Shown in pieces: positions 801 to 37,200 of a DNA stretch of 38,270 bases. The notes under the pieces are model-generated. The model searched no databases, was not told the DNA's origin, and saw only the letters and a program-made list of their open reading frames with translations. The position numbers and the translations under genes were made by a program. Within the stretch, counting starts at the first letter, position 1, and each line of letters begins with the position of its first letter. Source of the stretch: Macrostomum lignano (taxonomy: Eukaryota); contig NIVC01004030.1 of NCBI GenBank assembly GCA_002269645.1, forward strand, positions 1 to 38,270, written 5' to 3'.

Positions 801-864
801 CCACCTCGTACAGACTGCTTCCCTTAGTCAAGGATTCCATCTATGGAGTTAATCGCAGCCCTAA

Positions 865-7604: not shown

Positions 7605-7668
7605 CACCTCGTACAGACTGCTTCCCTTAGTCAAGGATTCCATCTATGGAGTTAATCCGCAGCCCTAA

Positions 7669-11708: not shown

Positions 11709-11757
11709 GATGACTGCTCCTGCTCCTGCTGCCCGTGGGTCCTTTGAGTCTTTTGAG

Positions 11758-11790
11758 CTGATGAAGCGAGGTTAATAACAAAAAATCGGG
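11758..11790 (-). promoter_or_regulatory. Splice-acceptor-like site ~50 nt upstream of the WDR17 ATG (5'UTR intron or trans-splice acceptor)
   Basis: The minus strand reads ttttttgttattaacctcgcttcatcAG, followed by a short leader to the ATG. A candidate donor G|GTGAGC lies at about 12080. Confidence 0.4.
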
Positions 11791-12995: not shown

Positions 12996-13550
12996 GAGTG
13001 AGGGGAGAGGAGGAGAGAGGGGAGAGAGGAGGGGAGAGAGGAGTGGACAGAGGAGGGGAGAGAGAGGAAGGAACAGAGGAGGGGAGAGAGGAGGGGAGAG
13101 AGGGAACAGAGGAGGGGAGAGAGGGAACAGAGGAGGGGAGAGAGGGAACAGAGGAGGGGAGAGAGGGAACAGAGGAGGGGAGAGAGGCAACAGAGGAGGG
13201 GAGGGAGGGAACAGAGGAGGGGAGAGAGGAGGCGAGAGAGGAGGCGAGAGAGGAGGCGAGAGAGGAAGGAACAGAGGAGGAAAGAATGGAGGAGAGCGAG
13301 AGAGGAGGGGAGAGAGGAGGGGAGAGACGAGGGAACAGAGGAGGGGAGAGAGGAGGGGAGAGAGGGAACAGAGGAGAGAGAGGCAGAGAGGAGGGGAGAG
13401 AGGCAACAGAGGAGGGGAGAGAGAAGGAGAGAGAGGCGAGAGAGTAGAGGGGAGAGGGAAGTAGGCGAAGGGAAAGAGAGAGGAGGGGAGAGAGAAGAGG
13501 GAGAGGAGGGGATGGGAGAGAGAAGAGAGGGGAGGGGGTGAGATAGGAGA
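12996..13550. repeat. GA-rich ~21-bp low-complexity array (AGAGGAGGGGAGAGAGGGAAC)n
   Basis: A purine-only tandem repeat with degenerate units. Confidence 0.95.
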
Positions 13551-14859: not shown

Positions 14860-15300
14860 CGGGATTCTCAGAGGCCTGTCGTGCGATTCAACAGCTATGA
14901 GGGACAACCCCCAAGGCACAGAGAGTGCACACACATTCCTGACAATTAGAAAGTACATTATTGGCGCGCTTGTATGCGCTCCCCAAGGCACAGAGACTGC
15001 ACACACATTCCTGACAATTAGAAAGTACATTATTGGCGCGCTTGTATGCGCTCCCCAAGGCACAGAGACTGCACACACATTCCTGACAATTAGAAAGTAC
15101 ATTATTGGCGCGCTTGTATGCGCTCCCCAAGGCACAGAGAGTGCACACACATTCCTGACAATTAGAAAGTACATTATTGGCGCGCTTGTATGCGCTCCCC
15201 AAGGCACAGAGACTGCACACACATTCCTCACAATTAGAAAGTACATTATTGGCGCGCTTGTATGCGCTCAAAAGTCAGCGGAATTGGCAGAATTGCCTTT
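14860..15300 (+). mobile_element. Decayed copy of the SINE at 35963-36328, with an internal tandem amplification
   Basis: ctgtcgtgcgattcaacagctatgagggacaacccccaaggcacag aligns with ctgctcgtgcaattaacggccttgagagccaaccccccaaggcgcag. Also, gcgcgcttgtatgc..agtcagcggaattggcagaattgcct aligns with gcgcgcttgtatgc..agtcggcggaatgggcagtaatgcct. Confidence 0.7.
14909..15270. repeat. 72-bp minisatellite, 5 near-identical copies
   Basis: The motif ccaaggcaca recurs at 14911, 14983, 15055, 15127 and 15199. Confidence 0.97.
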
Positions 15301-15890
15301 AGCACTTGGTCGCTGGTAATCGGCCGGGATGTCTTTTTTTGTCGAGATGACGCCTTCGCGAGTAGAGCTCTGGGCCGACTGGCAGACAAATTTCTTCCCA
15401 ATCGATGTCAGGCGTTGCTGGGGGCGCAATGAAGGACGAGTCGGGGAAGAGGCAGATCAGAAACTTGGGCCTGTGGATGGGAGACCGTGGCTCTAGGGGG
15501 ATGAGTTTCGAGCAGGGTATAGTTTGTTAAGAGAGCTGGAGGCTGGAGACACAACAGAGGCAGTTGGCACTATACCCAGATAAACTTTTTGTACGCGACG
15601 AAACATTTGCAGAAGATGTACGAAAGGACAGCGACTGAGGGAGAATGAGAACGAAATTAAATGATGAAGCGCTGCATATAGGGGAGCGGAATATTGAGAT
15701 CTGAGAGGCTGACTACAAGCTAGATGAAAGTGAATTCCCCCTAGCTAGCCGCTCCCCCGTATCATGCCAAATATAAGGAAAGAGTGAAAAAGCAGTAGTG
15801 GACAAAATTTCCATTAAAAAGCTTTTAATGGCTTTTCTAACTTCATTCAAAATTACCATGGATGGCTATTTGTTATCTAATACTCAAGGT

Positions 15891-16418
15891 ATCTATTGCA
15901 GATCGATGGGGGTATTTATTGCTTATCCATTGCAGATCGGGGGGTATTTAATGCTTATCTATTGCAGATCGGGGGGTATTTAATGCTTATCTATTGCAGA
16001 TCGTGGGTTATTTAATGCTTATCTATTGCAGATCGATGGGGTATTTATTGCTTATCTCTTGCATATCGATGGGGGTATTTATTGCTTATCTCTTGCATAT
16101 CGATGGGGGTATTTATTGCTTATCTCTTGCAGATCGATGGGGACATTTATTTCATATCTATTGCAGATCGTGGGTTATTTAATGCTTATCTATTGCAGAT
16201 CGATGGGGGTATTTATTGTTTATCTCTTGCATATCGATGGGGTATTTATTGCTTATCTCTTGCATATCGATGGGGTATTTATTGCTTATCCATTGCAGAT
16301 CGATGGGGGTATTTATTGCTTATCTCTTGCAGATCGATGGGGGTATTTATTGCTTATCTCTTGCAGATCGATGGGGGTATTTATTGCTCATCTCTTGCAG
16401 ATCGATGGGGTATTTATT
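15891..16418. repeat. 33-34-bp minisatellite (atctcttgcagatcgatgggggtatttattgctt)n
   Basis: About 16 tandem units; the G-run length varies. Confidence 0.95.
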
Positions 16419-16816
16419 GGACTTTTGTTGCAAGAAACTCAACCTTAAATTTGCTGTCTGATGAGTACTACTAATAGTAGTTCGCAGTTGGAGTTGGATT
16501 CTTATCGACAATTGATGTCAGAAATTTTTTATCGGAAAGGCAAAGGGCAGAACGGATTAAGTCGCTTTATTTGCACGGGTGCTGTTTGCAGTTGGGCGAG
16601 GCTGAGTTGCTGACTGCATGGTTTTGTGTGAGTTGCGCAAATTCGAATGGCGCATTGTTGTCAAGCCCAAAGCTCTGTTCAAATAGTTGCTACGGTGCAG
16701 CGATGTGACAAGCGGACAGATTTGGCCCCCGGGGTCTACAGCGAGGAATGCCTAAATTTTAGGCGTTCTCTTTCGGACTAACTGGGCTCCTATATGACAA
16801 TAGTAACTAATGTTGC

Positions 16817-16872
<56 letters not shown>

Positions 16873-16907
16873 CAGTTAGTTAGTCAGTTAGTTAGTCAGT
16901 TAGTTAA

Positions 16908-16976
<69 letters not shown>

Positions 16977-17009
16977 CAGTTAGTTAGTTAGTTAGTAAGT
17001 TAGTTAGTC

Positions 17010-17052
<43 letters not shown>

Positions 17053-17075
17053 CAGTTAGTTAGTCAGTTAGTTAA

Positions 17076-17118
<43 letters not shown>

Positions 17119-17121
17119 TTC

Positions 17122-17170
<49 letters not shown>

Positions 17171-17187
17171 ATTAGTTAGTTAGTTAA

Positions 17188-17250
<63 letters not shown>

Positions 17251-17252
17251 AC

Positions 17253-17299
<47 letters not shown>
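16817..17299. repeat. (TTAG)n microsatellite
   Basis: About 480 bp of TTAG with occasional TCAG and TTAA variants. Confidence 0.99.
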
Positions 17300-18073
17300 C
17301 TTTACACAAAAGTACAATTTTCAAGGTGAGCCGTGCCCCGTAAGCTCTCCAGACTCAATTGTGTCTCAGATTTCGTGTGAGCCGCACAAGCGAAGTGCCC
17401 ATTATCATCAGCTCACGCGCCAGTTCAGAGCAGCATTTCAAGCACTCCAGACAGGCTTAGAAAGCCTTCCTGTGAGTCAATTTGGCTCTCAGCGCACTGT
17501 GCCTCGAGTAGAAAAGAACGATGAAGAAAAAGCAAGCTCTGATTGCGCACTTTATACGGTTAGTTATTTTTCTCCCCATGCCAACCGTAATTAGATTGCC
17601 CCCCTAAGGCGAGCGGGGCCAGCAGATGGACAGGTTCGGTGCCAGCCACTCAGGACAGCTCACCGACTGCCACTTACTACAATATAGTAAATATGAGCTA
17701 ATGCTCAGCTTGACGGGTGGCAAATTAAGGGACAGAGAAAGACCAAGAGTGCCTTCCCGTGGAGATGATAGTGCAGTACCTCAACTGAGAGCACAATGCA
17801 ATCTCTTCTGCTCATTCCTTTCCTCTCTCATGCCTCTCCTTACCTGGTCTGCTTCTGCTCCCCCCGTTGGCGCCCCAAATTTCTATAGCAGCGCCAGAAG
17901 ACATTCACTGTCGCCGTAACAGAGCTAAACTGTGCCCACTTTATGAAGGAATTTTCCTTATTGCTCACATGAAACTGCCTGAGTTCTGCACAATCTTGTC
18001 TTCCTGCAAAAGCAGATTGGTCATAAGAAATTCCACTTGCAAAACCGGTTGGCATAAAGGTTTAAAACTCCAA

Positions 18074-18833
18074 GGTTTAAAATCACTTGGACCATCACCG
18101 GAAGTGAGATTGGTTTAAAATCACTTGGACCATCACCGGAAGTGAGATTGGTTTAAAATCACTTGGACCATCACCGGAAGTGAGATTGGTTTAAAATCAC
18201 TTGGACCATCACCGGAAGTGACATTGGTTTAAAATCACTTGGACCATCACCGGAAGTGACATTGGTTTAAAATCACTTGGACCATCACCGGAAGTGACAT
18301 TGGTTTAAAATCATTTGGACCATCACCGGAAGTGACATTGGTTTAAAATCATTTGGACCATCACCGGAAGTGACATTGGTTTAAATTCAATTGGACCATC
18401 ACCAGAAGTGACATTGGTTTAAAATCACTTGGACCATCACCGGAAGTGACATTGGTTTAAATTCACTTGGACCATCACCGGAAGTGACATTGGTTTAAAA
18501 TCACTTGGACCATCACCGGAAGTGACATTGGTTGAAAATCACTTGGACCATCACCGGAAGTGACATTGGTTTAAAATCACTTGGACCATCACCGGAAGTG
18601 ACATTGGTTTAAAATCACTTGGACCATCACCGGAAGTGACATTGGTTTAAATTCACTTGGACCATCACCAGAAGTGACATTGGTTTAAAATCACTTGGAC
18701 CATCACCGGAAGTGACATTGGTTTAAATTCACTTGGACCATCACCGGAAGTGACATTGGTTTAAAATCACTTGGACCATCACCGGAAGTGACATTGGTTT
18801 AAATTCACTTGGACCATCACCAGAAGTGACATT
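18074..18833. repeat. 38-bp minisatellite x20, 17 units containing ACCGGAAGTG (ETS consensus)
   Basis: Unit ggtttaaaatcacttggaccatcACCGGAAGTGacatt at a strict 38-bp period. Units 9, 16 and 20 carry ACCAGAAGTG instead. Confidence 0.97.
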
Positions 18834-18875
18834 GGTTCAGGATCACCAGTACAATAACCAGAAATAGTACCGCAA

Positions 18876-19046
18876 ATGCAGGTAAGTGTACAATCCAGAG
18901 CTCCGGTCGTGGTCAGCCTTCTGAGCTGGTTTTGCTGCCTTCTCGTGTCGGGCCAGCTGACGACGGAGCAGCAGCAGGCGGCCCTCGACTTTCACAACGA
19001 ACTGCGGGCATCGGTAGTGCCGACTGCGGCTAATATGCGAATGCTG
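18876..19046 (+). CDS. CAP/SCP (CRISP/GLIPR-like) protein, exon 1: signal peptide and start of the CAP domain
   Basis: MQVSVQSRAPVVVSLLSWFCCLLVSG is followed by LTTEQQQAALDFHNELRASVVPTAANMRML (the HN..R..V.P.A.NM motif). Phase-0 donor GTGAGT at 19047. Confidence 0.85.
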
Positions 19047-19129
19047 GTGAGTCAGCATCTTCATCTGCTCATTGGCTTCTTTTATTGCGTAGAAGATTGC
19101 TCTAATAGAGAGTGGTTCAGCTGTATGGT

Positions 19130-19663
19130 AGAGAGAGAGGGTTCCGTTGTAAGAGAGAGGCTTCAGTTGTAGGGTAGAGAGAGGGTTCCGCTGTAGGGTA
19201 GAGAGAGGGTTCCGCTGTAGGGTAGAGAGAGGGTTCCGCTGTAGGGTAGAGAGAGGGTTCCGTTGTAGGGTAGAAAGAGGGTTCCGCTGTAGGGTAAAGA
19301 GAGGGTTCCGCTGTAGGGTAGAGAGAGGGTTCCGCTGTAGGGTAGAGAGAGGATTCCGCTGTAGGGTAGAGAGAGGATTCCGCTGTAGGGTAGAAAGAGG
19401 GTTCCGCTGTAGGGTAAAGAGAGGGTTCCGCTGTAGGGTAGAGAGAGGATTCCGCTGTAGGGTAGAGAGAGGGTTCCGCTGTAGGGTAAAGAGAGGATTC
19501 CGCTGTAGGGTAGAGAGAGGGTTCCGCTGTAGGGTAGAGAGAGGATTCCGCTGTAGGGTAGAGAGAGGATTCCACTGTAGGGTAAAGAGAGGATTCCGCT
19601 GTAGGGTAGAGAGAGGGTTCCGCTGTAGGGTAGAGAATGGGCTCCGCTGTAGGGTAGAGAGGG
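19130..19663. repeat. 24-bp minisatellite (ccgctgtagggtagagagagggtt)n in CAP intron 1
   Basis: About 22 tandem units. Confidence 0.96.
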
Positions 19664-19732: not shown

Positions 19733-19966
19733 GCGTGGTCCAGCCGTCTGGCCAGCCTGGCGCAGGCCGCGGCAGACAAGTGCATCTTCGAGCACAACTA
19801 CGGAGGCGACTACGCGGGCCTGGGCGAGAATCTGTACATGGGCGGCGCGGACATCAAATCGGCGATCATGCTTTGGTACACCGAGGGCGAGAATTACAAT
19901 TTCGCTACTGGCTCGTGCAGTCCCGGACGATATCCATCGTATACAACCTGTGGCCATTGGAGCCAG
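19733..19966 (+). CDS. CAP protein, exon 2
   Basis: ccccAG|AWSSRLASLAQAAADKCIFEH..GENLY..AIMLWYTEGENYNF..CGHWSQ|GTAG. The exon is 234 nt, phase 0-0, and carries CAP motifs. Confidence 0.92.
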
Positions 19967-20107: not shown

Positions 20108-20193
20108 GTTGTCAAAGCCAGCGTTTCGAGCGTTGGCTGCGGTCTGAAGAACTGCGGTGGCTCCAGCTTGATCGTCTGCGAGTACAATTCTGG
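20108..20193 (+). CDS. CAP protein, exon 3
   Basis: ttcgcAG|VVKASVSSVGCGLKNCGGSSLIVCEYNSG|GTGAG. It completes GHWSQVV and the VGCG..C..VC.Y motif, and ends in phase 2. Confidence 0.9.
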
Positions 20194-20521: not shown

Positions 20522-20877
20522 CCACGACTATAAAAGTACATCATAGGAATAGTCACATGATCAAGGTCGCATATTGTTGGCTTCAGGGGATAATCTTTCT
20601 CAGAGAACTGATGTCTGTCAATCTCCAGACAAGACAGGCATATCAAATTCATTTTCTCCGAATCTTTGCTGTTGCTGTGTGATAATTAACTGCATTTGTC
20701 AACATCATGTGATTTAAAAAAGGATTTTATTGATCATCCCGTGTTTGAATGGTAAGAATAAGAAAAAAATGGCGGTTCTGATTACAAACAAATATTTCTT
20801 TCTGATTAATGAATTCTATCTCTGGGTAGGATTCTTTTAGCGCACTGAATGACCCTGTAATTACCCTGTAATTGGAG

Positions 20878-21662
20878 TCCCTGACTACCCCCAGAACACA
20901 CCCTGGCGTCCCTGACTACACCCAAAACACACCCTGGCGTCCCTGACTACACCCAGAACACATCTGGCGTCCCTGACTACACCCAGAACACACCTGGCGT
21001 CCCTGACTACACCCAGAACACACCTGGCGTCCCTGACTACACCCAGAACACACCTGGCGTCCCTGACTACCCCAAGAACACACCTTGCGTCCCTGACTAC
21101 ACCCAGAACACACCTGGCGTCCCTGACTACACCCAGAACACACCTGGCGTCCCTGACTACACCCAGAACGCACCTGGCGTCCCTGACTACACCCGGAACA
21201 CACCTGGCGTCCCTGACTACCCCAAGAACACACCTGGCGTCCCTGACTACACCCAGAACACACCTGGCGTCCCTGACTACACCCAGAACACACCTGGCGT
21301 CCCTGACTACACCCAGAACACACCTGGCGTCCCTGACTACACCCAGAACACACCTGGCGTCCCTGACTACACCCAGAACACACCTGGCGTCCCTGACTAC
21401 ACCCAGAACACACCTGGCGTCCCTGACTATCCCCAGAACACACCTTGCGTCCCTGACTACACCCAGAACACACACATTGCGTCCCTGACTATCCCCAGAA
21501 CACACCTGGCGTCCCTGACTACCCCCAGAACACACCTGGCGTCCCTGACTACACCCAGAACACACCTGGCGTCCCTGACTACACCCAGAACACACCTGGC
21601 GTCCCTGACTACACCCAGAACACACCTGGCGTCCCTGACTACACCCAGAACACACCTGGCGT
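20878..21662. repeat. 30-bp minisatellite (ccctgactacacccagaacacacctggcgt)n in CAP intron 3
   Basis: About 26 tandem units. Confidence 0.97.
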
Positions 21663-21790
21663 CATTGACAGCACGCATTACTGCTTGTTATGACTCGAGC
21701 TTAGTCTATGGTTTTACGATCTTAATTGTAAACGCCAGATCTAGCCCGTAAGTGTCCCCAACATCAGGTAAATCTGCTCCTTTGTTGCAG

Positions 21791-21918
21791 CGAGGCTCAG
21801 CCGCCCTATACGACAGGCAAGCCGTGCTCGCAGTGCCCCTACTACGCAATGTACTGCTACAGAGGTCTCTGCCTGACCAGCGCACAACGCAGCGCCCTGA
21901 CAAATCCGTCAAATGCAG
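21791..21918 (+). CDS. CAP protein, exon 4: Cys-rich hinge
   Basis: tttgttgcAG|(G)EAQPPYTTGKPCSQCPYYAMYCYRGLCLTSAQRSALTNPSNA(G)|GTGAG. This is the CRISP/GLIPR hinge PY..G.PCS.CP...C...LC. Phase 2 in, phase 1 out. Confidence 0.88.
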
Positions 21919-24704
21919 GTGAGACAAAAAACCAAAGTGGCTGTTTGTTGATTTCATAGCCACAGTAATGAGAGAAAAACAATGTAACCGTCATAAAAGT
22001 CGGGGGTTTTAATATAGATAGCTGATATGTCATTGTCGTTGACTCCAGATTGATTGTAGTCACCATTAGAGGGGCCAATTGGCAAATACGAACGTGTTTT
22101 AATATGGCGCGATTTCTTATAAGCACGCTAAACTGCCTACTTTTAATCAGTAGACGTTTCAGCTCATTAATAGTATTAGTTTTGCTAACTTGCTAAGACG
22201 CCAAGTAAACGCTGCGTTTCGCCCCCATACTTCCCATTTTTGAGTCCGGTGGCCGGATCGGGTGTGGGGTGGGGGTTCGGGACAAAGCCGCGGACTCGGA
22301 AGTAAAGCTCAGCGGAGCAGAAAGAAGTGTGGCGGATGAGTCAGAGCTTCTGCAGCTACTCCCTCTCTTGAAGGGGGGGCAGGGGCTGAAAGAGCTTTGA
22401 AAATGGAAAGCTTTGTCTTCCGGCGTTATTGAACGGAAGCGAGGAAATACATACAGAGAATGAAGAAAACTTCTTCTAAAGAAAAAATCAGATTATCTGC
22501 CCTACTAGAACCAACGGAAGGTGTTATGCCTACCGATAGCGGAAGCACTTTCATTTACCAAGGGGAGTAGCTGGGGGCATCCAAAGAAGGGTGGAAAAAA
22601 CTATGGCAGCCAAACTGAATAAGCGCCCCCTTTGTAGCAGCTGTGGCGCCCCTTAATGCTGGGTGCTCCCACGATAGCGCCCCAAGATGGCGCCTCCCTC
22701 TGACTATTGCCCGCTGCATTTACCATCATAAAACGCGATATAGTAAACACAAATGATAAACGTATTTTGTTTACAAATCACCAACAAAAATATAAACAAA
22801 TATCTGAATACGCAAAACTGATCTGTCCAAGCAGCATGCATTGGAGAGACCTTGAAATTTACGCTAGCAAAATTGAAAAAATAACCTAATGCCTGCATAA
22901 TAGGCGATCCCAGGGGACCCTCTGATGGGGCGGAGGCTGGGGCGGGAACTCAGACAGGCTTAACCGAGACGAATGCCTCCATGGAATTTCCTCGGCCAGC
23001 TTCCACCATCTACCTATACTGCTTCCTGCCTTCTCAGGTGAAAATTTCTAACCCTCCTCAGGCGACCGGGTTCTGCTACCTCAGAAAGGGAAAAGCAAAT
23101 GTAGAATAATGGGGAGGCGGGTGAGCGGGCAGGGTGGGGGCAATTTTTCGATCCGGAATCCCCGCCGCCAACCACCTCACCAGCGTGCGGATGAATTTCC
23201 CACTTTGTCCCGCCAAGGCCCTTTTTTCTCCTTCGAGGGGGGGGCTCCCGAGGTCCGAGCGGCTATTTCCACTTCCCGCTTGTCAGTCAGCCCATCTCCT
23301 ACCTCCAAGTCCCAGTAAATGAGGAAGGAGAGATGGATTAAGTAGAGAGAATCTGGGAGGGGACCAGAGAGCTAAAGCAGCATATTATCCATCCTCTCAG
23401 CAGCTTCCAAAGCTCCCCATCTCGGTATGGGGGAAGGATTGCCTAACTCAGCTGCTTCCTTCTGCACACGCTCAGGTATCCGGAATGGGGGATTCGGAGG
23501 ATGGGGTGGGGCTAGCCAAAAGCCTGGCTGTGGCCGGGAGAGGAAGTGGATCGGCCCTCCCGCCACTACGTTTCCCTCCAGCTTCCTCCCAGTCGCATTT
23601 CCTCTTCTCTTCCTCTTAGTCCAGCACCGGCAGTTTCCTCCTCCGACCTCCGGCCCGGGCCCAAGGATCCCAAGGCTTTTTTGTGATCTCCTAAACCCAC
23701 CCCATCGCCCAGTTTCCTTCCTTCCTCTTACCCTCATCTTCCGCCCGTATAAGTCGTATACTATATACATATACTTACATATACTATATACTTACATACA
23801 TAAAGGTCCTACCCCCAACCTCCTAGGCCCCATCTCTTTCCGCTCCCTTTCGGAGGTTGGTTTGGGGAGGATGCGGAAAAAGAATGGGGGGGCTGTGAGA
23901 CTCGCCATTAAGACCCAGACCCAGATTCCGTCTCCTCAGCCTCTCCAATGCCCAACTCTCCGCAGTCTCCTCTCGGTGTAACCCTTCGGAGTTCTGAACT
24001 GAACCCTCCCGTCGTGCATCTATCAGCCTATCTAACCCTCCGGGCTCGTCCTATTGGATTGCGGGTAGGCTGCGTGGATCAGGGTTTGGGGGAGGGAGGT
24101 GAAAAACCTTCGCTCACTCACGCTCACACACGTCAGCCACGGCTGCCACGCCACGCGACGCGACAGGCCACCTCAGCTTTTCTCTCGTTCTCTCTCTCTT
24201 CTCTCTCGCGCGCCCCCATCCACCCACACACCCACTGGCTGGCGCTATACATTTCATTAGATAGCACGGAGAGAGAGGAGGGCGCAGGGGTGTCAGAGAG
24301 GACGGGGCAGGAATAAAAACGGTCTTTCCTTGGCTTGGGTTGTAAAGGCCAAGGTGGGGGAGGGGGCGAAGGAGAGAGGCGACGGGGGGAGAGGGGTGTG
24401 TGGAGGGGTGACGTTTTAGAAGCCCCCCCCGCCCCGCACGCATTGAAGGCAAGCGTCGCGTGGGGAGGTTGGGGTTGTTTGCAGCGGAGGTAGGGTTGGC
24501 TGGGGGTCTAGCAGAGAGAAAGGACAAGAGCATAGCGGAGGCTAAAAAGGAAAGGAAAGGGAGAGAGGAGGGGTACACGCGGACGCGTACAGCAGGAAGC
24601 GTATGGCTCATGTGCTCCGGCGCTTCCTGCCTCAACTGCCCTAGCCAAAGCTCTCTTTCTTGCCTCCCTCACCCAGACCAACCCTCCCCCTCAGTTCGGG
24701 CCTG

Positions 24705-24898
24705 ACTTCCTGCTTGCCTTGATTATGGGTGGGGTGTCCTCGCTAGAGCGGAAATGAATCCTACCGACTTCCGCTGTTTAATAAGGCTCGGCGGATTCGC
24801 TTGCTTCCGCTCCGAGCCGAGCTGCAGGAAATCGAAGCCCGACTGGATTGGCCTGTCCGCTCCAACTTCCTGCTCCTTAAAACCCTGCCACTTCCTGT
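24705..24898. promoter_or_regulatory. Cluster of 7 ETS-type GGAA sites plus a CCAAT box upstream of the ETS gene
   Basis: ACTTCCTG 24705, GCGGAAAT 24748, ACTTCCGC 24767, GCTTCCGC 24803, CAGGAAAT 24825, ACTTCCTG 24865 and CACTTCCTGT 24889; ATTGG at 24847. Confidence 0.5.
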
Positions 24899-25093
24899 TC
24901 CATTTTCGGGTCTTCATTTAACCGTAGTCCGTAGCCCTGTTTACCAGAGCTGAGCTGACGCCAGGACCCGCAGAGCAGAGCAGAAGTGAGCCCGCTGGAG
25001 GAAGGGAGAGTCCCCTATAGTGAGCAGGCAGGACTTTGAACAGCGAAACTTTTTAAGTCCGTTCTATCGCAAGCCGAAGCTAAAAACCAACTC

Positions 25094-25315
25094 ATGGAGA
25101 CTGAATCGGCTGCTGCGGCTAGCGAAGATCTTCGCCGTCACCGCCACAACAATCACAGTCGGCACAGCAGCGACGGCGAAGACAACAATAATTTTAACAA
25201 TAATAACAATAACCATAATAATAACAGTCATCCGGCAGAGCAGGCTTTGTCCTCAGATGAGGACGGCGACTTCGGATCCGCCGACGAGATTGGGAGCGAG
25301 GAGGCCAGCGCATGG
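25094..25315 (+). CDS. ELK: ELK-like ETS factor, coding exon 1 (74 aa, His/Asn/acidic low complexity)
   Basis: ATG at 25094 and donor TGG|GTGAGT at 25316 (phase 0). It splices in frame to the acceptor at 28238/28239. Confidence 0.7.
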
Positions 25316-25489
25316 GTGAGTTACTGGCAAATTTCCTGTCCTGTATAGTTAATATTTTAACATGATATTAAACTTTTCCGTTTAATTTTCACTAATAAAT
25401 CGACACGACACTAACAGGTCGAATCGCTTGGTCCCCCCTTTGATTTTTTTTGGGTCTCCGCCTAGGTTTTTAAAGCACCAGATTGCCTT

Positions 25490-26000
25490 TTGAGGTTTCT
25501 TTTAAGAGGCGCCATGTTGAATTTTTGAGGCGTCGGGTTGCTTTTTGAGGTTCCAAGTTGCTTTTTGAGGTGCCATGTTGCTTTTTGAGGCGCTTAGATT
25601 GCTTTTTGAGATGCCATGTTGCTTTTTGAGGCGCTTAGATTGCTTTTTGAGATGCCATGTTGCTTTTTGAGGCGCTTAGATTGCTTTTAGAGGCGCTTAG
25701 ATTGCTTTTAGAGGCGCTTAGATTGCTTTTTAGGCACCAGGTTGCTTTTTGAGGCGTCAAGTTGCTTTTTTAGGCACCAGGTTGCTTTTAGAGGTGCTTA
25801 GATTGCTTTTAGAGGTGCTTTAATAGCTTTTTAATTGCTTTTTGAGGCGTCAGATTGCCCTCTTAGGTACCAGATTTCTATCCTAGGCGCCAGGTTTCTA
25901 TCCGAGGCGCCAGATTGCTTTTCGGCGCGTTTAAGAGGCGCCACATTGCTTTTTCAGACGCCACATCGCTTCTTTAGGTGTCAAATTGCTTTTTGAGGTT
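25490..26000. repeat. Degenerate ~21-bp repeat (gaggcgcttagattgcttttt)n in the ETS intron
   Basis: Recurring gaggcgcc/ttag..attgcttttt units. Confidence 0.85.
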
Positions 26001-26479
26001 TCTTGCTGAGACACCAGACCGGTTTCTAGGGGTGCTTATATATATGGAGCAATTAGTGTGCACAAGTGTTTACGAGTTCAAATATTCCATAGTCAATTTT
26101 CGAACGAAGCTGAGCTGGTTGGTGTCATAAATTATCATAAAAAACTCCAACATAGCATAACCCAAAGCACTCAAAATATTCATAATCGTCTTTACCACGG
26201 GCATAACCTTAAAAAAATTCCTAATAAGGACTTGAAATCAAGAGACCCCGACTGCGCAGTTCTGCTTGCCAGTACCAAGGCATAAACTAAGGTGATCCTT
26301 TTTACTAAACCTAAATTTAGTGTGTGTGGATAGCAAAGTTATAAAAATTAGCATCGAATATATTAAAATTGCCACTAATCGTGTGTCGCGCAGGGCTGAA
26401 CAGCTGTTAGTGAGGAAGTTGGTTTGGTTAATGGTTGGCATGATTTTCATCGAAGCAACTCTTATTTACATTGCATGTA

Positions 26480-26870
26480 AAAATGGCACCTCTCAGATTC
26501 AAAGTGGCGCTGAAATGACAAAAATGGCACCTCTCAGATTCAAAGTGGCACAAACTCAATTAAAATGGCACCTCTCAGACTCAAAGTGGCACAAACTCTT
26601 GAAATGAAAATGGCACCTCTCAGATTCAAAGTGGCACAAACTCAATGAAAATGGCACCTCTCAGATTCAAAGTGGCACAAACTCATAATTAAAATGGCAC
26701 CTCTCAGATTCAAAGTGGCACAAACTCAATGAAAATGGCACCTCTCAGATTCAAAGTGGCACAAACTCAATTAAAATGGCACCTCTCAGATTCAAAGTGG
26801 CACAAACTCAATGAAAATGGCACCTCTCAGATTCAAAGTGGCACAAACTCAGAATTAAAATGGCACCTCT
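26480..26870. repeat. ~41-bp minisatellite (aaaatggcacctctcagattcaaagtggcacaaactcaatt)n
   Basis: About 9 units, with a period of 41-44 bp. Confidence 0.95.
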
Positions 26871-27374
26871 CTTTGGCGCCGCTGCCAATGCTGCATCTTA
26901 AAGAACTTATCTTTTTGAATTTCCTTTTTTGAGACAATCATTTCTATTCTTATGCATTACTATTACTATCACTATAATTACTATTACTATTACTATTACG
27001 AAACTATACTATAGTAAGTAAACAATCTGCAGTTATTGCCAGCCATGGACGCCTAGAATATAATGATCTGGAACATTTTGAAGTTTTGAAGTTTACAGAG
27101 AAAGCTTCTAGTCCAGATCACTACCATCAGGCGTCCATGGTTAGTTCGTTCGCCATGGATAACATAGATTGTTATCGAACAGCATTCCTGTGGTTTTTGT
27201 GCCTTGGAATCTGTTGTGTCATGTCGTGAATTCTTGATGCTATTTATAGAAGCACATAGTTGTAGTATTTAAGTCTGTTTGATGACTATATAAGTATTAG
27301 GCTTGTCAGATCAGATCACGCACAAGAAAAACAAAGATTGTTCATAGGCTGTCATTTAGGGCGCCAAAATAAAC

Positions 27375-28100
27375 ATGAGGTCGCCAAAATGATCACGAGG
27401 TAACCAAAACGATCACGAGGTCACTAAAATGATAATGAAGTCACCAAAATGATCACGAGGTAACCAAAAAATCACGAGGTCACTAAAATGATCACGAGTT
27501 TACCAAAATGATCATCAGGTCACCAAAATAATCATGAGGTCGCTAGAATGATTTCGAGGTCACCAAACTGAGCATGAGGTCGCCAAAATGATCACGAGGT
27601 AACCAAAATGATCACAAGGTCACTAAAATGATAATGAGGTCACCAAAATGACCATGAGGTCAGCAAACTGATCATGAGGTCACCAAAATGACCGTGAGGT
27701 CAGAAAACTGATCATGAGGTCACCAAAATGACCATGAGGTAACCAAAATGATCATAGGTCACTAAAATGATCATGAGGTCACCAAAATGACCATGAGGTC
27801 AGCAAACTGATCATGAGGTCACCAAAATGACCATGAGGTAACCAAAATGATCATAGGTCACCAAAATGATCATGACGTCACCAAAATGATCATGAGGTCG
27901 TTAAAGTGATAATGAGGTCACCAAAATGATCATGAGGTCCCAAAATGACCATGAGGTCACCAAAATGATCATGAGGTTATTAAAATGATCATGAGGTCAC
28001 CAAAATGATCATGCGGTCACCAAACGATCATGAGGTCATCAAAGTGATAATGAGGTCACCGAAATGATCATGACGTCGCTAGAATTATCACGAGGTAACC
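27375..28100. repeat. Degenerate 20-bp minisatellite (gaggtcaccaaaatgatcat)n
   Basis: About 36 units in the ETS intron. Confidence 0.93.
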
Positions 28101-28238
28101 AAAATTAACGCGAGAGAGTCTAACCTTAATAATAATTTCCCAGAGCTAATTACAATGGCTATATAATATACATACAAAAGTATAAATTATACTCGAATTC
28201 CTAATGATGATGATAATTTAAATGAATTCTATTCGCAG

Positions 28239-29909
28239 CTCGCCCGCGCCAGCCGCAGCCTATGCGAAGATTCCCAAGCCGCTGCTGCAGGCATGGACCT
28301 CAGTGGCGCGATCGGCGTCGGAGGCGCCGGCAGTGTCACCAGCACTGGCGGCGGCGTCGGGATCGGCGTCGGCGCCGACGGTTCTTCGCCGCCGTTGCAA
28401 GGCGAGGTGAACGTCACGCTGTGGCAGTTCCTGCTGGAGCTGCTGATGAGCCGGCAGTACTCGCACGTGATCCAGTGGACCAACCGGGAGGGCGAGTTCC
28501 AGCTGCTGAGAGCCGAGGAGGTGGCCCGGCTGTGGGGCATGCGGAAGAACAAGAACCACCGGATGAACTACGACAAGCTGTCCCGGGCGCTGAGGTACTA
28601 TTACCAGAAGAACATCATCAAGAAGGTCCAGGGGCAGAAGTTTGTGTACAGATTTGTCGGTTTAAGCGACAGCGTACTGAGGGCGCCGAGGTCACTTGGC
28701 ACCGCGGCGGCCGCGGCGGCAGCGGCGTCGAGCATCGCGACACCGTCTGACGGAGTCAGCCCGAAGCTCGAAGCGGTGGACGACGATTTGCCGGCCTCTC
28801 CGCAGCTCGAAGAGCCGCAGGCGGCGATTCCCGTCCCGTTGTTGCAGAAGCAGCCGCAGCCGCCTCAACAGCTTCAGCATCAGCCGACCGAGTCGCTGAC
28901 TCCGCCCCCACAGCCAGCGGTGCTGAACCACCAGCCCAGGAGGCTGTGGCAGCATCATCATATCCAGCAGCATCAGCAGCAGCAGCACCAAGGCCTCGAT
29001 CTCAGTCTGCCGCACGCGGCTGCAGCAGCCGCAGCCTTGCTAGCGTCGTCAGCAGCGTCAACACCGCCGCAGCCGCAGCCTTTGGCGCTGTCTAAGCGGC
29101 TCCGTTCGCCCGAATCCGCCGCCGCCGCCGCCGCTGCCTCCGCCAGATCGCCGGAGTCTCCGCCGGCCAAGCGGCCCTGCTGCGCTTGCCGCTGCCACGA
29201 GTCGCCGGTGGACTCGGCAGCGTCCGGAGCGAATTCTACTGCCGGCTCGACTCCTCGCATCAAAACCGAGCCGACAGTCGGAGCAGCGACAGCGGCGTCG
29301 GCTGCCGACTCGCCAGATAGCGGCAGCAGCGGCGGCGGCGGCTTGCCCAGCAGCTACATCCAATGGCTGACTCTCGAGCTCGCTGGCGGAGCGGCTGCAG
29401 CCGCAGGAGGAAGCGGCAGCGGCGGAGGCAGCGGCGGCGGCCCCCCGGCTTTCCTGCACTCCAGCCGGCACGCGGCCAACATGAAGAAGCTGGCAGAGCA
29501 CATCCGCCTGCAGAAGCTGTTCAAGAGGCCGTCGCTGACACCGACGCAGCCGCACCAGCCGCCGCCGACGCATCAGTCCGCGGATCCTGTCGCTGCCGCG
29601 GCTGCCTCGCCGTCAGCGTCAAGCCACGGCCTGAGCCATCAGCAGCCGGCTCCGCCGCACGCCGCAGCCGCTGGCCTCACCGCCGCCTCGTCGTCGTATG
29701 CAAGCAACGGGTCGCCGTTCTCCCCGCCCGGCTGCGTGTGGATGCCGGTGCCCGTGGCCATGCTGTCCCAGCTCTGGGCCGGCCAGGAAGCCGCCGCCGC
29801 CGTGGCCGCCGCCTCCGCAGCCGCCGCCGCTGCAGCCGCGGCCGCGGCCGCTCCCTCTTCAACCTCCGGTGGCGTCCCCGGCGGCGAGTCCGAAGGTCAA
29901 GGCGAATAA
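28239..29909 (+). CDS. ELK: ELK/TCF-subfamily ETS transcription factor (ELK1/3/4, lin-1-like), main exon
   Basis: The ETS domain [74 protein letters not shown] (~28413-28660) closely matches ELK1 by recall. The acceptor attcgcAG at 28237-38 is in frame with the ATG at 28293. The C-terminus is Ala/Gln/Pro-rich with SP/TP sites. Confidence 0.93.
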
Positions 29910-30757
29910 ACGGCGGGACTCCGCCAGTGAAGCGCTATAGCTTATGGGTTGTCGACATCGTAGTGAGCAGCACTCTTTACATACCAATATTCCTACATAC
30001 TCGCATATTAAACTATCAATATTATAGTAAATCTTTGTTTAAACTGTACAGCTAGTACTGAATGCACGTCAAAACACTCCCAAGTGTACTTTTGTTTGTA
30101 CTTTAATTTTTAGACAATATCTCGCCTCGGCCCGCTTTATAAATGCCATCCTTTGCTGCTACCCGATTTTCTTTTTGTCTCTCTTTCCTGTTTTCCTTTT
30201 CTTGTTGCAAACCTCTCTTCTGCGCGTTTTTTCCTACTCCGCTCTGTCACCTGGGAGGGACAATGCGAGCAATTATCAGTTCAAAGCGAAACTCGCAGCA
30301 GAAGAATGGACGTTGCGCCTACTGTTAGTAGCATTGGATTTTCGGTCAGTTTTTTTTTATGATTCCTTTTCTTTTTAATATATTTTTGTCCTTAACTCCG
30401 CCCTCCACCCTCTTTCTTCGCTTGGGTCCCCACGTCCTGCCAACCGATGCATTCCCAGTAGTGCAGATCCCCCCCTGTACATAGCAGCACGATCCCCTCC
30501 CTCGGAAGATCGCAGTTGTTGTACGCCATCAAAATCCGACTGGCTAAATAAATTATTAGTTGGGCACCAATGCTGCATGAGAAGGGGCAGACTAAGCTTC
30601 TCTTCTTGTTTTCAAATCGTCTGCAATGACCTTTCTTTGTGAAATTATTTCTATTTACAAAGAAATTGCTTGTTCAGGGAAGCGCGCGCTGTTTTTTGGG
30701 GGGCGCGGTTGATGGGGCCAGTACCAGTGGCGCCAGTATCAATGGGCACCAGTGCCA

Positions 30758-30826
30758 GTGGCGCCACAACTGCTGTGAACGGGGCGCCACAATTGCTGTG
30801 AATGGGGCGCCACAATTGCTGTGAAT
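30758..30826. repeat. 23-bp unit x3 (ggggcgccacaattgctgtgaat)
   Basis: Starts at about 30758, 30781 and 30804. Confidence 0.85.
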
Positions 30827-31288
30827 AGGACATTGTGTGATGCTAGGAAATGAACTGTCAGAGTGCAACAAATCTTGACCACCACTTCGTATAGCCCCTG
30901 TCTGGCTGGCAGAAAAAGATTGAAAGAATAAAAATATAAATATTTTTTCATTAAACTGAAATTTAAATTGTGTCCGTGGAATTGACAGTTCCAAGGGGAC
31001 AGCTGTAGCTATATTAATATCCGGCCAGCAGGGAAGTGACTGCAGCTTACTTTACAGCTGCCTCGGACAGGAAGTTCAATTTCCGGTTTGGAAAGACTGG
31101 CGCCACCGTTTTGGCATCCTTGCTTCCGGCCTCGATTCAGTAGCAAAACTTTTGCCAATCTCTCTTTGCAGGAAATTTCTATGTATACCTTACTAGTTCC
31201 TCCGGATAAAGTTGTCATTTTTGTATCTTTTCAAGACTGTAATTTATGCATGACAAAGCGCATCTGTTGACATGTTTGAGAATGAATA

Positions 31289-31950
31289 ACTGCCATTTTG
31301 GGTTTGAAGTGGACTGCCATTTTGTGTTTGAATTGGATTGCCATTTTGGGTTTGAATTGGATTGCCATTTTGGTTTTGAATTGGACTGTCATTTTGTGTT
31401 TGAATTGGACTGCCATTTTGTGTTTGAAGTGGACTGCCATTTTGTGTTTGAATTGGATTGCCATTTTGGGTTTGAATTGGATTGCCATTTTGGTTTTGAA
31501 TTGGACTGTCATTTTGTGTTTGAAGTGGACTGCCATTTTGTGTTTGAATTGGATTGCCATTTTGTGTTTGAATTGGATTGCCATTTTGTGTTTGAATTGG
31601 ACTGTCATTTTGTGTTTGAATTGGATTGTCATTTTGTGTTTGAATTGGATTGCCATTTTGTGTTTGAATTAGATTGCCATTTTGGGTTTGAATTGGATTG
31701 CCATTTTGGGTTTGAATTGGACTGTCATTTTGTGTTTGAATTGGACTGCCATTTTGTGTTTGAATTGGATTGTCATTTTGTGTTTGAATTGGATTGCCAT
31801 TTTGTGTTTGAATTAGATTGCCATTTTGGGTTTGAATTGGATTGCCATTTTGGGTTTGAATTGGACTGTCATTTTGGGTTTGAATTGGACTGCCATTTTG
31901 TGTTTGAATGGGACTGTCATTTTTTTATGTGGACTGCCATTTTGTGTTTG
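31289..31950. repeat. 24-bp minisatellite (tgccattttgtgtttgaattggat)n
   Basis: About 27 units; it gives the spurious DCHFVFEL ORF. Confidence 0.97.
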
Positions 31951-32429
31951 AATGCGGCTAACCTTTCTGCTTTGTTACATGTACCTCACACACGAGTCTG
32001 GAGAGCGGGGTGGATGCAGTTTGGATCAGTCTCAGGGGTCACGACAGACTTAGACAGAGCAAAACAGCGGTTGAAAGTGAATATGCTTGACTAATGTGTT
32101 TCTTTAGCAAATGATTTGGAAAGCTTTGAGCTGGCGTGCAAGCGGGAATCGCACATACACTGTATAGGGGCGGGGGGGGGCACCAGGGCATGTTTCAGCC
32201 GGCAGGTGCGGGCAAATGCATGGCGCCGTTCCCCATCATTATTCCCCAGCTCCTCATCAATTCCACACGTGACCCCAGCTGCAGTCACCTCAGAGCCCGC
32301 GCTGTTTCAAAGAAGCCTTTAATAAAATAGTGCAGCTCAGATAATAAGCCCGCGCATCCGATGCTTCACTAATTACACGGCATTAGCATGAGCTTTTAAT
32401 CACACGGTTTTATCCCTGCTAATCGACAG

Positions 32430-32507
32430 CCTGCAGACCCGATTGCAACGACTGTCAGCACGTGACCTACTTGGAGAATGTCATGTGCCAGTGCACCAAC
32501 AACGCCT
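32430..32507 (+). CDS. Cys-rich exon (putative exon 5 of the CAP-EGF gene)
   Basis: atcgacAG|(A)CRPDCNDCQHVTYLENVMCQCTNNA|GTAAGT. The exon is 78 nt, phase 1-1, which is compatible with the phase-1 donor at 21919. Confidence 0.8.
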
Positions 32508-33183: not shown

Positions 33184-33306
33184 CCTGCACTGCTTCGGTG
33201 TGCAGCGCTGCGGGCACGCCGTGCGTTCATGGCAGCGACACGTCCAGCAGCGGTGGGGCCTGCGTTTGCACCTGCGCAAGCGGCTACTCAGGGCCGCAGT
33301 GCCAGT
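33184..33306 (+). CDS. EGF-like domain exon (putative exon 6)
   Basis: ggtacAG|(S)CTASVCSAAGTPCVHGSDTSSSGGACVCTCASGYSGPQCQ|GTGAGT. It carries the EGF C.C..GY.G..C signature and is 123 nt, phase 1-1. Confidence 0.88.
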
Positions 33307-33666: not shown

Positions 33667-33755
33667 TCGATACAAGTCAGCTGGACAATGGCATTCAGCT
33701 GCGCTTTGCTGGCGGAGTGCGGTCCTGCAGTTACTATCCGACACCCACGTATTTG
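33667..33755 (+). CDS. Putative exon 7
   Basis: attctAG|(F)DTSQLDNGIQLRFAGGVRSCSYYPTPTYL|GTGAGA. Phase 1 in and phase 0 out, bridging exons 6 and 8 exactly. Confidence 0.75.
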
Positions 33756-33924
33756 GTGAGAGATAAAAATATAAATTTTAGCTGCCTTATGGGCCTACTT
33801 AAAGTAGCATTGATTGAACACGCTGATTAACTAGTTAACCAGTTACTAATAGAGAAGGGATCAGTGACAAGTCAATGAATGGCCCTAGGGGAAGAGAGGG
33901 AGTGACAAGTGATAAGCCAAGTCA

Positions 33925-34211
33925 AGTGACAAGTCAGTGCCTCAGAGGAATGGGAGGGAGTGACAAGTCAATATCTCAAAGGAATGGGAGGGAGTGACAA
34001 GTCAGTGCCTGAGAGGAATGGGAGGGAGTGACAAGTCAAAGCCTCAAAGGAATGGGAGAGAGTGACAAGTCAATGCCTCAAAGGAACGGGAGGGAGTGAC
34101 AAGTCAATGCCTCAAAGGAATGGGAGGGAGTGACAAGTCAATGCCTCAAAGGAATGGGAGGGAGTGACAAGTCAATGCCTCAAAGGAACGGGAGGGGTGA
34201 CAAGTCAATGC
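33925..34211. repeat. 34-bp minisatellite (gtgacaagtcaatgcctcaaaggaatgggaggga)n
   Basis: About 8-9 units, with degenerate units back to about 33860. Confidence 0.95.
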
Positions 34212-34269
34212 GTAGGGTAGGGTAAAGGCATGTCAGATATCCAACCACCAGCCTCTCCTCCGTCCACAG

Positions 34270-34567
34270 TGGCAGAGCTCCCTCCAGTTACCCGTGCTCG
34301 CCTCAATCGCGGATATTCTCAACAAATTCTGCTCCGGTGACGACCTGGGATCGAATCTGACGGCCGCGGCAATCGCGGCGCTGTGCTGCCCGGACACCGG
34401 CGCCACGGCAGGCAACAGCCAGCTGTTCATCAATGCCAGCGACTTTGGCGTGGTGGCAGCCGACAGCGGCTATTATCCGCTGCAGGAGGTGACAGGCGAG
34501 ACCAAGGTGGTGCTGTACGCAAGGCGGAGATCCACTGACGCGTTCTGCAAGCGGGTGACTGCTTCCG
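34270..34567 (+). CDS. Putative exon 8 (unrecognised Cys-containing extracellular domain)
   Basis: ctcctccgtccacAG|WQSSLQLPVLASIADILNKFCSGDD..ALCCPDTG..KVVLYARRRSTDAFCKRVTAS(G)|GTGAGG. GC3-rich codons; phase 0 in, phase 1 out. Confidence 0.82.
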
Positions 34568-34600
34568 GTGAGGAATACTCTCAGTTCTCCATTATCCATG

Positions 34601-34886
34601 TACTTTGAGTTCTCCGTGTACTTTGAGTTCTCCTTGTACTTTGAGTTCTCCGTGTACTTTGAGTTCTCTATGTACTTTGAGTTCTCCGTGTACTTTGAGT
34701 TCTCCGTGTACTTTGAATTCTCCGTGTACTTTGAGGTCTCCGTGTACTTTGAGATCTCTATGTACTTTGAGTTCTCCGTGTACTTTGAGTTCACCGTGTA
34801 CTTTGAATTCTCCGTGTACTTTGAGTTCTGTATGTACTTTGAGTTCTCCGTGTATTTTGAGTTCTTTATGTACTTTGAGTTCTCCA
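34601..34886. repeat. 18-bp minisatellite (tactttgagttctccgtg)n
   Basis: About 16 intronic units. Confidence 0.96.
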
Positions 34887-35089
34887 TGAACTTAGAGTTC
34901 GCGTGTCTCCAAACGGATTTTGTACAGATTTTTTCTTTTCTCCGTAGTTTAAATAGGGAACAATTACGATATAGACAGACAAACTCAGTTGGGAAAAATC
35001 GTCTAAAAAGGTACACAAAAAGATGAAATGAAATGACATTTCCTGTAGTTGTTGTTCATGTTTAGTAAAACCAAAACCTTGCACTGCAG

Positions 35090-35444
35090 GCTCCGGTCAG
35101 TACCTGAACCTGTCCTCATTCGAGTCAATTCTACGGCTAGGCAACGCCAGTTTAGCTGGGAACGGGTCCGACCCAATTGGCTGCTGCGGCTATTATGCCA
35201 CCGTGATTACATCGGCAAGAAATGCCACGGTGCAGTGGCCAACCTACTGCCTGGGCGGCGGCGGCGGCGGCGGCGGTGGGGGTGGTGGATCAAGCAGCGG
35301 CAGCTCAGGCTCCGAAAGCAGCAGCGGCACCGGAAGTGGCCAGCTAACCAAAGTTGTCCTGGAGGCCGCCATCGTGGCGGGATAGTCAGCTCGGCAGCGC
35401 TTCTGACCGTTTTGGGACTGGTCGTTGCGCTGGTTATTGTGTAA
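35090..35444 (+). CDS. Putative terminal exon 9: Gly/Ser stalk and C-terminal hydrophobic anchor (frameshift at 35379-35381)
   Basis: gcactgcAG|(G)SGQYLNLSSFESILRLGNASLAGNGSDPIGCCGYY..WPTYCLG12SSSGSS..KVVLEAAIVAG. One extra G in the G3 run continues the frame into IVSSAALLTVLGLVVALVIV*. Confidence 0.8.
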
Positions 35445-36909: not shown

Positions 36910-37200
36910 ATGATCGCCCAATCCTCATTCTGCAGCCCGAAGATCCGAGCAGCCACTTCAGCATCGGTCAGCCCGTCGATCAACAAGAAGCCGGGGGAGG
37001 CGGCGGACCCGGATCCGCAGAGACCAACGACTCCGCCGCCAGAATTTGCCAACGCTGGCGATCAAGGAGGCGAAGCCCCTGGGCAGCAGCAAGACCAGCC
37101 CGCCGTGTTCAATGCGCCCGGACCGCTAATGGGGATGCCATTCATACCGGACTCTGGCAACGACCCGCTGCCTTCGTTTCTATGGAGACCGCCGGTGTAG
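36910..37200. other. GC-rich, exon-like segment of unknown gene and strand
   Basis: A GC island in AT-rich surroundings. There is a + strand ORF of 96 aa with the acceptor-like cattctgcAG at 36934. There is also a plausible minus-strand terminal exon ending ..LLIDGLTDAEVAARIFGLQNEDWAII*. No family was recognised. Confidence 0.3.

Follow-up and report, generated by a model that had tools for sequence, protein, structure and literature searches.

Does a stretch of DNA from the flatworm Macrostomum lignano (NCBI GenBank assembly GCA_002269645.1, contig NIVC01004030.1, positions 1 to 38,270 of the forward strand; the whole 38,270 nt are called the window below) carry one gene for a protein with a CAP and an EGF-like domain, whose fourth intron houses a complete second gene on the same strand, or do the CAP and EGF exons belong to different genes with an ELK-type ETS gene lying between them? 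A first-pass annotation of the window had proposed the former, and comparison with paralogues, mRNA contigs and a crinoid protein supports it. We put at about 75% the probability that the exons at 18.9-21.9 kb and at 32.4-35.4 kb form one CAP-EGF gene (the host), with intron 4 holding a complete same-strand ELK-type gene (the guest); the exons up to 37.2 kb are probably also part of the host gene. This reading is the most economical because it is backed by colinear homologues, a conserved intron and a single set of exons, with no alternative gene ends.

The host exons and the intron at issue were delimited as follows.

18876-19046, + strand: host exon 1, with the ATG, a signal peptide (VVVSLLSWFCCLLVSG) and the first part of the CAP domain; family tblastn matches at 18909-19073.
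19733-19966, + strand: host exon 2, core of the CAP domain (EHNYGGDYAGLGENLY ... CGHWSQ); Pfam CAP and family tblastn matches.
20108-20193, + strand: host exon 3, end of the CAP domain (VGCG ... CEYNSG); family tblastn matches.
21791-21918, + strand: host exon 4, CRISP-type hinge (PCSQCPYYAMYCYRGLC), with the phase-1 donor GCAG/gtgaga; family tblastn matches at 21747-21917.
21919-32429, + strand: host intron 4, 10,511 nt, holding the whole ELK-type gene; the homologous intron at the paralogue locus L001 (see below) has 85 nt.
32430-32507, + strand: host exon 5, Cys-rich segment (ACRPDCNDC...CQC), phase 1 at both ends, with the acceptor cgacag/CCTGCA.
33184-33306, + strand: host exon 6, EGF-like domain (CVHG...CVCTCASGYSGPQCQ); family tblastn matches.
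33667-33755, + strand: host exon 7, in which the C-terminal module begins (LQLRFAGGVRSCSYYPTPTYL); 46-50% identity to the family proteins P0132 and P0001.
34270-34567, + strand: host exon 8, the part of the C-terminal module that has the pattern F-C ... CCP ... D ... C, invariant across the family.
35090-35385, + strand: host exon 9, with a CCG motif, a Gly/Ser linker, 10 hydrophobic residues and an in-frame TAG at 35383-35385.

Spliced together, the nine exons give a single open reading frame (ORF) of 500 codons with zero internal stops. Residues 37-161 of the model match CAP over its full length (Pfam PF00188, E = 5.7e-19, 1-117 of 117); the CAP core and the Cys-rich hinge of the CAP superfamily are thus both present, the hinge (PCSQCP..C..GLC) aligning with the family, and in the alignment the invariant family residues C324, C342, C343, D361 and C396 are all kept. 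The first-pass annotation had exon 4 closing with a phase-1 donor at 21918/21919 and a Cys-rich exon opening in phase 1 at 32430, and both boundaries are where it placed them. Its further claim, that five downstream exons join in consistent phase to a terminal hydrophobic tail, stood in part: the phases agree, provided that the small exon at 33667-33755 is counted, whereas the tail amounts in frame to VVLEAAIVAG only, followed by the TAG.

The junction between the two halves is supported by relatives that contain both. A protein search for relatives holding CAP and EGF together, run with a query spanning the junction, as the first-pass annotation had advised, found P0001 (45% identity, 90% coverage) and P0002, both colinear with the model across 21918/32430. 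The wider family, obtained from a profile search of 1.84 billion representative proteins, has the order signal peptide, CAP, CRISP-type hinge, Cys-rich segment, EGF, Cys-containing module, Gly/Ser linker and hydrophobic C-terminus. CAP, hinge, Cys-rich segment, EGF and module occur in one chain in P0001, P0002, P0126, P0127, P0146, P0161, P0133, the M. lignano GenBank models P0274 (PAA70697) and P0276 (PAA70698), and P0258, a RefSeq protein of the crinoid Antedon mediterranea (XP_071958483). P0161 and P0133 each come from an unbroken ORF on a contig of 1.6-2.1 kb, assembled from the RNA-seq runs SRR30276812 and SRR30276804, and so real mRNAs contain the complete architecture. The part of the host model beyond 32430, searched alone, matched residues 181-374 of P0001 (E = 6e-19), the mRNA-derived P0161 (E = 4e-14) and the crinoid P0258 (E = 2e-9), all three of which have CAP at the N-terminus. 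Every complete family member with the module also has CAP, the module-only matches being fragments. A homology search with the downstream part plus the tail (401 aa) returned no match, probably because Gly/Ser low-complexity words swamped its list of 8000 candidates; unlike that query, the CAP-to-EGF query and the profile search recovered the family. Since the window is itself M. lignano DNA (an older protein model of the same locus, P0005, is described below), the 37-45% identity of the M. lignano CAP proteins marks them as paralogues, not orthologues.

Gene structure points the same way. At the closest paralogue locus (L001; GCA_002269645.1, NIVC01002975) the homologous intron lies at the identical codon and in phase 1: the hinge exon (8968-9075) ends TCC A/gtgagt and the following exon (9161-9235) begins ttgcag/CC TGC, so that the first five exon bases, CCTGC, are common to host exon 5 and its counterpart. 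All seven comparable intron positions are shared between the host and L001 (7/7). When 13 family members were compared with the window by tblastn, they matched the proposed host exons only, once each and in order, and none found a family-homologous exon inside 21919-32429.

The ends that separate CAP and EGF genes would need were also sought. Between 21919 and 24311, that is, for 2.4 kb past 21918, there is no AATAAA or ATTAAA able to end a CAP-only mRNA. Upstream of the EGF exons, a scan of 29910-32429 found no convincing signal-peptide first exon (ATG start, phase-1 end, hydrophobic), as the first-pass annotation had also noted; the best candidate, at 32220-32268 (MAPFPIIIPQLLINST, donor CAC/gtgacc), is weak, with a poor hydrophobic core containing two prolines. 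Spliced-leader (SL) trans-splicing could in principle supply a start, the M. lignano leader ending in ATG (PMC8629364). The acceptor at 32430 is without the M. lignano trans-splice motif, [T/C]TNCAG. We rejected the EGF exons as an SL-trans-spliced gene using the leader ATG, which is out of frame at 32430 and would read MPADPIATTVST before a stop after 12 codons.

The host C-terminal module merits description of its own. It spans about 180 residues (window 33667-35260, host residues ~274-455) with the pattern F-C ... CCP ... D ... C ... CCG, is conserved between flatworm proteins and the crinoid protein, and always follows CAP-EGF. In the host, P0132, P0161 and P0258 it is without a Pfam match, and from its sequence it appears to be an undescribed extracellular domain. 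AlphaFold2, run on the paralogue P0002 with a two-sequence alignment, returned a mean predicted local distance difference test (pLDDT) score of 33.

What lies inside intron 4? The guest sits wholly between consecutive host exons (ELK coding sequence 25094-29909; host sequence ending at 21918 and resuming at 32430), and all exons of both genes are on the + strand. Its parts, in order, are these.

22200-25093, + strand: GC-richer (0.5-0.6) non-coding block before the ELK ATG, a putative promoter and 5' untranslated region (UTR).
25094-25315, + strand: ELK exon 1, an ATG, 74 acidic/Asn-rich codons and the donor CATGG/gtgagt; coding status uncertain, two frames being open.
27099-27139, + strand: optional 41-nt exon in the ELK intron (tttacag/AGAAAG...TCCATG/gttagt), used by the older model P0005.
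28239-29909, + strand: ELK exon 2, with the ETS domain (28416-28658), a long Ala/Gln/Pro-rich C-terminal region and the TAA at 29907-29909.
29905-29910, + strand: AATAAA overlapping the ELK stop codon; further hexamers at 30007 (ATTAAA) and 30547 (AATAAA).

The two-exon ELK model has 630 residues, of which 134-214 match Pfam Ets in full (PF00178, E = 5.2e-33, 1-81 of 81). The closest PDB matches of the ETS domain are ELK4 (129 bits) and ELK1 (127 bits), the next subfamily being ETV4 (100 bits), and the named top database matches of the protein are nearly all Elk-1/3/4. By these similarities the nested gene is a conserved ELK-type ETS gene, presumably functional, and it is not a retrocopy, having a 2.9-kb intron. 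Beyond the ETS domain, similarity to the distant flatworm-type ELK-like protein P0006 is confined to flatworm-type motifs; the two have CCxCxCH, NMKKLxE and a third motif of 11 letters in common, and in the C-terminal region (window 29150-29760) they share stretches of 27 and 16 letters. The AATAAA that the first-pass annotation had seen across the ELK stop codon is there.

The top match of the ETS protein is P0005 (M. lignano, UniProt A0A1I8JN23, E = 1e-217), which is identical to the window over long stretches, even in another frame (25032-25292) and past the stop codon (30676-30780). Because the identity to window DNA extends to such out-of-frame translations, P0005 is an older, frameshifted model of the same locus. 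The 41-nt exon that it uses has good splice sites and closes with an ATG that is in frame with ELK exon 2, so that it may serve ELK as an alternative 5' exon or start codon; likewise, an SL ATG joined at 28239 would read MLARASRS... in frame with the ETS ORF. An exact look-up of the contiguous ETS ORF starting MDLSG found no match.

Motifs of the type [T/C]TNCAG occur in the intron at 24485, 24828, 27033 and 27099, the first two being candidate SL trans-splice acceptors within the GC-richer block. Ten other ORFs of the intron contain no Pfam domain, and none is recognised in the rest of the intron on either strand, and a tRNA scan and Rfam search over the window gave no match. Neither terminal inverted nor long direct repeats were found flanking the ELK block, and we therefore rejected its capture by a transposon. 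The promoter and terminator scan used a bacterial model and is uninformative for this window.

Several observations weigh against a host gene that is spliced across this intron. The pyrimidine tract of the ELK exon 2 acceptor (ttctattcgcag) is better than that of the host acceptor at 32429, and splicing from 21918 to 28239 would give a frameshifted chimera of 376 residues; such a CAP exon 4-ELK exon 2 fusion was rejected as a real product, its phases differing (1 versus 0) and its tail being frameshifted and Arg-rich. At 10.5 kb the intron exceeds the mean intron length in M. lignano, 1.1-1.4 kb (PMC5730564), by a factor of ~8-10. Exact look-ups of five candidate products (the fused protein with and without repair of its transmembrane segment, the read-through product of the CAP half, and the ETS protein from two alternative starts) were all negative, and searches of the collections, which included M. 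lignano proteins in UniProt and GenBank (PAA...), yielded no protein ~100% identical to either host half. The host gene seems to be unannotated in both public annotations, and it may be weakly expressed or simply unannotated. The last of these observations is that the expected transmembrane segment is out of frame, so that this copy of the host may be damaged. The features concerned lie at the 3' end of the gene.

35382-35440, + strand: transmembrane-like segment of 20 residues, IVSSAALLTVLGLVVALVIV, one base out of frame (+2) with exon 9 and ending in the phase-2 donor TTGT/gtaaga.
36936-37200, + strand: putative last host exon, 265 nt, PKIRAATS...LWRPPV and stop, encoding a Pro-rich cytoplasmic tail; it needs the frame to be restored near 35381.

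Read in frame, the host protein ends ...SGQLTKVVLEAAIVAG at the TAG. The donor at 35440 is phase-compatible with the acceptor at 36936, giving an 88-codon Pro-rich ORF that ends at 37200. This is the layout of the closest paralogue, P0132, in which a Gly/Ser linker is followed by a transmembrane segment at the end of an exon and by a tail as a separate last exon; the crinoid P0258 also has a transmembrane segment at the corresponding place, and a tail. In P0274 (...LGVAVVALG and stop) and P0161, by comparison, the protein ends in a short hydrophobic stretch, which in P0274 is followed by a true 3' UTR. Both kinds of C-terminus therefore occur in the family. The stop ahead of the transmembrane segment is the sole lesion in ~1.8 kb of coding sequence, and it is either a one-base assembly indel or a recent real truncation.

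These same points sustain the main rival explanation, according to which the host is disabled: splicing across intron 4 would have been lost after the ELK-containing DNA arrived, what is left of the EGF, module and transmembrane exons would be in decay, and the CAP half would make at most a short secreted CAP-hinge protein, either by read-through (...SNAGETKNQSGCLLIS and stop) or by way of an acceptor at 22048. The very large intron with its competing splice and poly(A) signals, the frameshift or stop at 35383 and the failure to find an annotated or transcript-derived protein of nearly 100% identity to one half or the other are all as this explanation would have them, and CAP plus hinge alone is a viable architecture, being found in P0003 and P0004. 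Against it, the lesion is a single one, the splice sites are canonical in 10/10 exons and every family-invariant Cys and CAP residue has been retained. Nor need the stop disable the protein, P0274 having just such a short hydrophobic C-terminus, and it may not be real, given possible indel errors in the assembly and an older model of the same locus, P0005, that is full of frameshifts. Past 21918, furthermore, a truncated CAP mRNA would find no canonical poly(A) hexamer within 2.4 kb. We consider a disabled host unlikely, and favour a single CAP-EGF gene spliced across the intron.

It is very improbable that the ELK block was mis-joined into a CAP-EGF intron during assembly of a genome that is rich in repeats and was recently duplicated. 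Minisatellites occur in nearly all introns of the window, a partial tandem duplicate of the upstream Gemin5-like gene, 6.8 kb away, could itself be an assembly error, and M. lignano is described in PMC10468722 as a hidden polyploid with difficult assemblies. Against a mis-join, tandem repeats are absent from 21664-25521, which takes in host exon 4 and, with the block preceding it, ELK exon 1; from the ELK 3' end to 32430 a single array occurs (31289-31953), and its 665 bp are easily spanned by long reads. In addition, the older, independent model P0005 is colinear with 25032-30780, and the window has zero runs of N.

Least probable of all is that the window holds two independent genes, a CAP-only gene ending soon after 21918 and an EGF-module gene with its own first exon or SL site at 29.9-32.4 kb, with ELK merely between two neighbours: although the 21918-32430 splice rests on sequence comparison, a weak candidate first exon exists at 32220-32268 and M. 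lignano trans-splices 30-39% of its genes (PMC5730564, PMC8629364), the two halves complement each other exactly within a single family architecture and meet at an ancestral phase-1 intron, all complete carriers of the module also carry CAP, the candidate exon has its poor, proline-containing core, and a leader ATG at 32430 would meet an early stop behind an acceptor that is not of the trans-splice type.

How might one gene be expressed across another? If the host is a single gene, an ancestral phase-1 intron 4 would have been enlarged to 10.5 kb and would now contain the ELK gene. ELK and the host would most likely be separate transcription units, ELK probably having a promoter of its own in the GC-richer, tandem-repeat-free block at 22.2-25.1 kb and a separate poly(A) site that probably falls within 29.9-30.6 kb. 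Transcription of the host would begin near 18.86 kb, and host transcripts would read through the ELK unit and be spliced from 21918 to 32430, bypassing the stronger-looking acceptor at 28238, probably in cells or at times in which ELK 3'-end formation is weak. Because host transcripts must read through the ELK unit past a competing acceptor, mutual transcriptional interference or exclusive expression of the two genes would be expected. Interference and competing splice and poly(A) sites have been described for mammalian host-nested pairs (PMC3192792, PMC11694760, PMC13309782).

By analogy with the operons of this species, a second mode of expression is conceivable, since M. lignano trans-splices about one-third of its genes and ~7% of its transcriptional units are polycistronic. 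In such an 'intronic operon', which we regard as decidedly unlikely, the ELK mRNA would be released from the host primary transcript by SL trans-splicing and then polyadenylated; the candidate acceptors are 24485, 24828, 27099 or 28239, and ELK may then lack a promoter of its own or rely on more than that promoter alone. Host mRNA and ELK mRNA would be mutually exclusive per primary transcript, and a gene for a secreted protein would be coupled to a signalling transcription factor via a splice-versus-cleave decision.

The surroundings of the two genes have the metazoan character of the window as a whole, with GC-rich exons and AT-richer introns. Fourteen distinct tandem arrays lie between 17000 and 37640, comprising (TTAG)n, (CTGT)n and (TCTA)n microsatellites and minisatellites with periods of 18-42 nt; they occur in almost every intron, for example at 18074-18837, 19107-19661, 20873-21663, 26478-26871, 27364-28105, 31289-31953 and 34595-34900. 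The Gemin5-like gene (WD40 propellers and a GEMI5 TPR domain) occupies 7672-11771 on the - strand, and its ORF changes frame between ~9300 and 9600, by an intron or an indel. The partial Gemin5-like copy (854-4052), 6804-6813 nt upstream, is 100% identical in the three 300-nt blocks compared; this points either to tandem duplication in the very recent past or to an artefact of assembly, and it is a warning about the assembly. At the paralogue locus L001, extra CAP-like tblastn matches at 7553-7873 and 11104-11487, with 39-47% identity to P0001, flank the paralogue gene and suggest tandem CAP-family copies.

Nested genes are common, and this locus leaves the current understanding of them unchanged. 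It has practical consequences all the same: gene finders are prone to split or miss such a host gene, and the older ELK model at this locus is frameshifted. If the host is expressed, the pair would be a compact and tractable test case for same-strand interference between host and guest; with transgenesis, SL trans-splicing and operons available in M. lignano, the removal of a 10.5-kb gene-bearing intron is open to study. A by-product of the comparison is a family of CAP-EGF-module proteins that occurs in a flatworm and a crinoid and of which some members have a transmembrane segment and others do not.

Against known proteins, guest and host are each partly familiar. The guest resembles ELK1, ELK3 and ELK4 in its ETS domain, which is closest to that of ELK4 and ELK1; unlike in those proteins, the domain is not at the extreme N-terminus of the two-exon model, inspection by eye recognised no SRF-binding B-box in the window ELK, and the C-terminal motifs go with flatworm ELK-like proteins instead of with vertebrate ELKs. 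The host had been labelled CLEC18-type. CLEC18 proteins are secreted and have a CAP domain and EGF-type Cys-rich modules together with a C-type lectin domain. The host likewise has CAP and then EGF-type Cys-rich modules; in place of the lectin domain it has the undescribed module, a Gly/Ser linker and a hydrophobic C-terminus. As Pfam recognised only CAP, and lectin_C matched neither the 500-aa host model (E up to 0.1) nor the module alone (E up to 1), the label does not hold as a statement of membership.

Membrane-tethered CAP proteins offer another comparison, GLIPR1 having a transmembrane segment and PI16 a glycosylphosphatidylinositol (GPI) anchor or hydrophobic tail. In the family members P0132 and P0258, as in these, an extracellular CAP domain and hinge are tethered by a C-terminal hydrophobic segment; the differences are the EGF domain and extra module between hinge and anchor and, in the window, an anchor interrupted by a stop or frameshift. 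Judged by its predicted architecture, the host is a member of a lineage-expanded, unnamed family of CAP-EGF-module proteins, secreted or membrane-anchored.

As an arrangement of genes, the pair can be set beside the SL operons of M. lignano, in which ~15% of genes lie (PMC5730564, PMC8629364). In both, same-strand genes can be covered by one primary transcript; operon genes are in tandem, with repeat-adjusted spacers of ~100 bp, whereas the guest of the window is inside a host intron. Metazoan intronic nested pairs are closer, for in them too one intron of the host encloses an entire protein-coding gene that has an intron of its own. The first-pass annotation had called same-strand nesting the rarer form. 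It is a minority class, but hardly a rare one: in human, ~63% of nested genes lie on the strand opposite to the host (PMC3192792), leaving ~37% on the same strand. The pair described here differs from the human majority in being same-strand, and from human pairs in general in belonging to a flatworm with SL trans-splicing and operons. It is a new instance of a known arrangement, ordinary intronic nested genes. A second M. lignano locus (L002, NIVC01001211) provides a counterpart from the same protein family and the same genome: at 3608-19584, P0276 and P0274 (one of them 400 aa and the other 440 aa, + strand) lie within the span of a gene for a 1097-aa Dis3-like RNB exonuclease (- strand). There the CAP-EGF genes are the guests, on the opposite strand; the roles are reversed in the window, where a CAP-EGF gene has a guest on its own strand. 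Nesting thus recurs in the CAP-EGF family and in the M. lignano genome.

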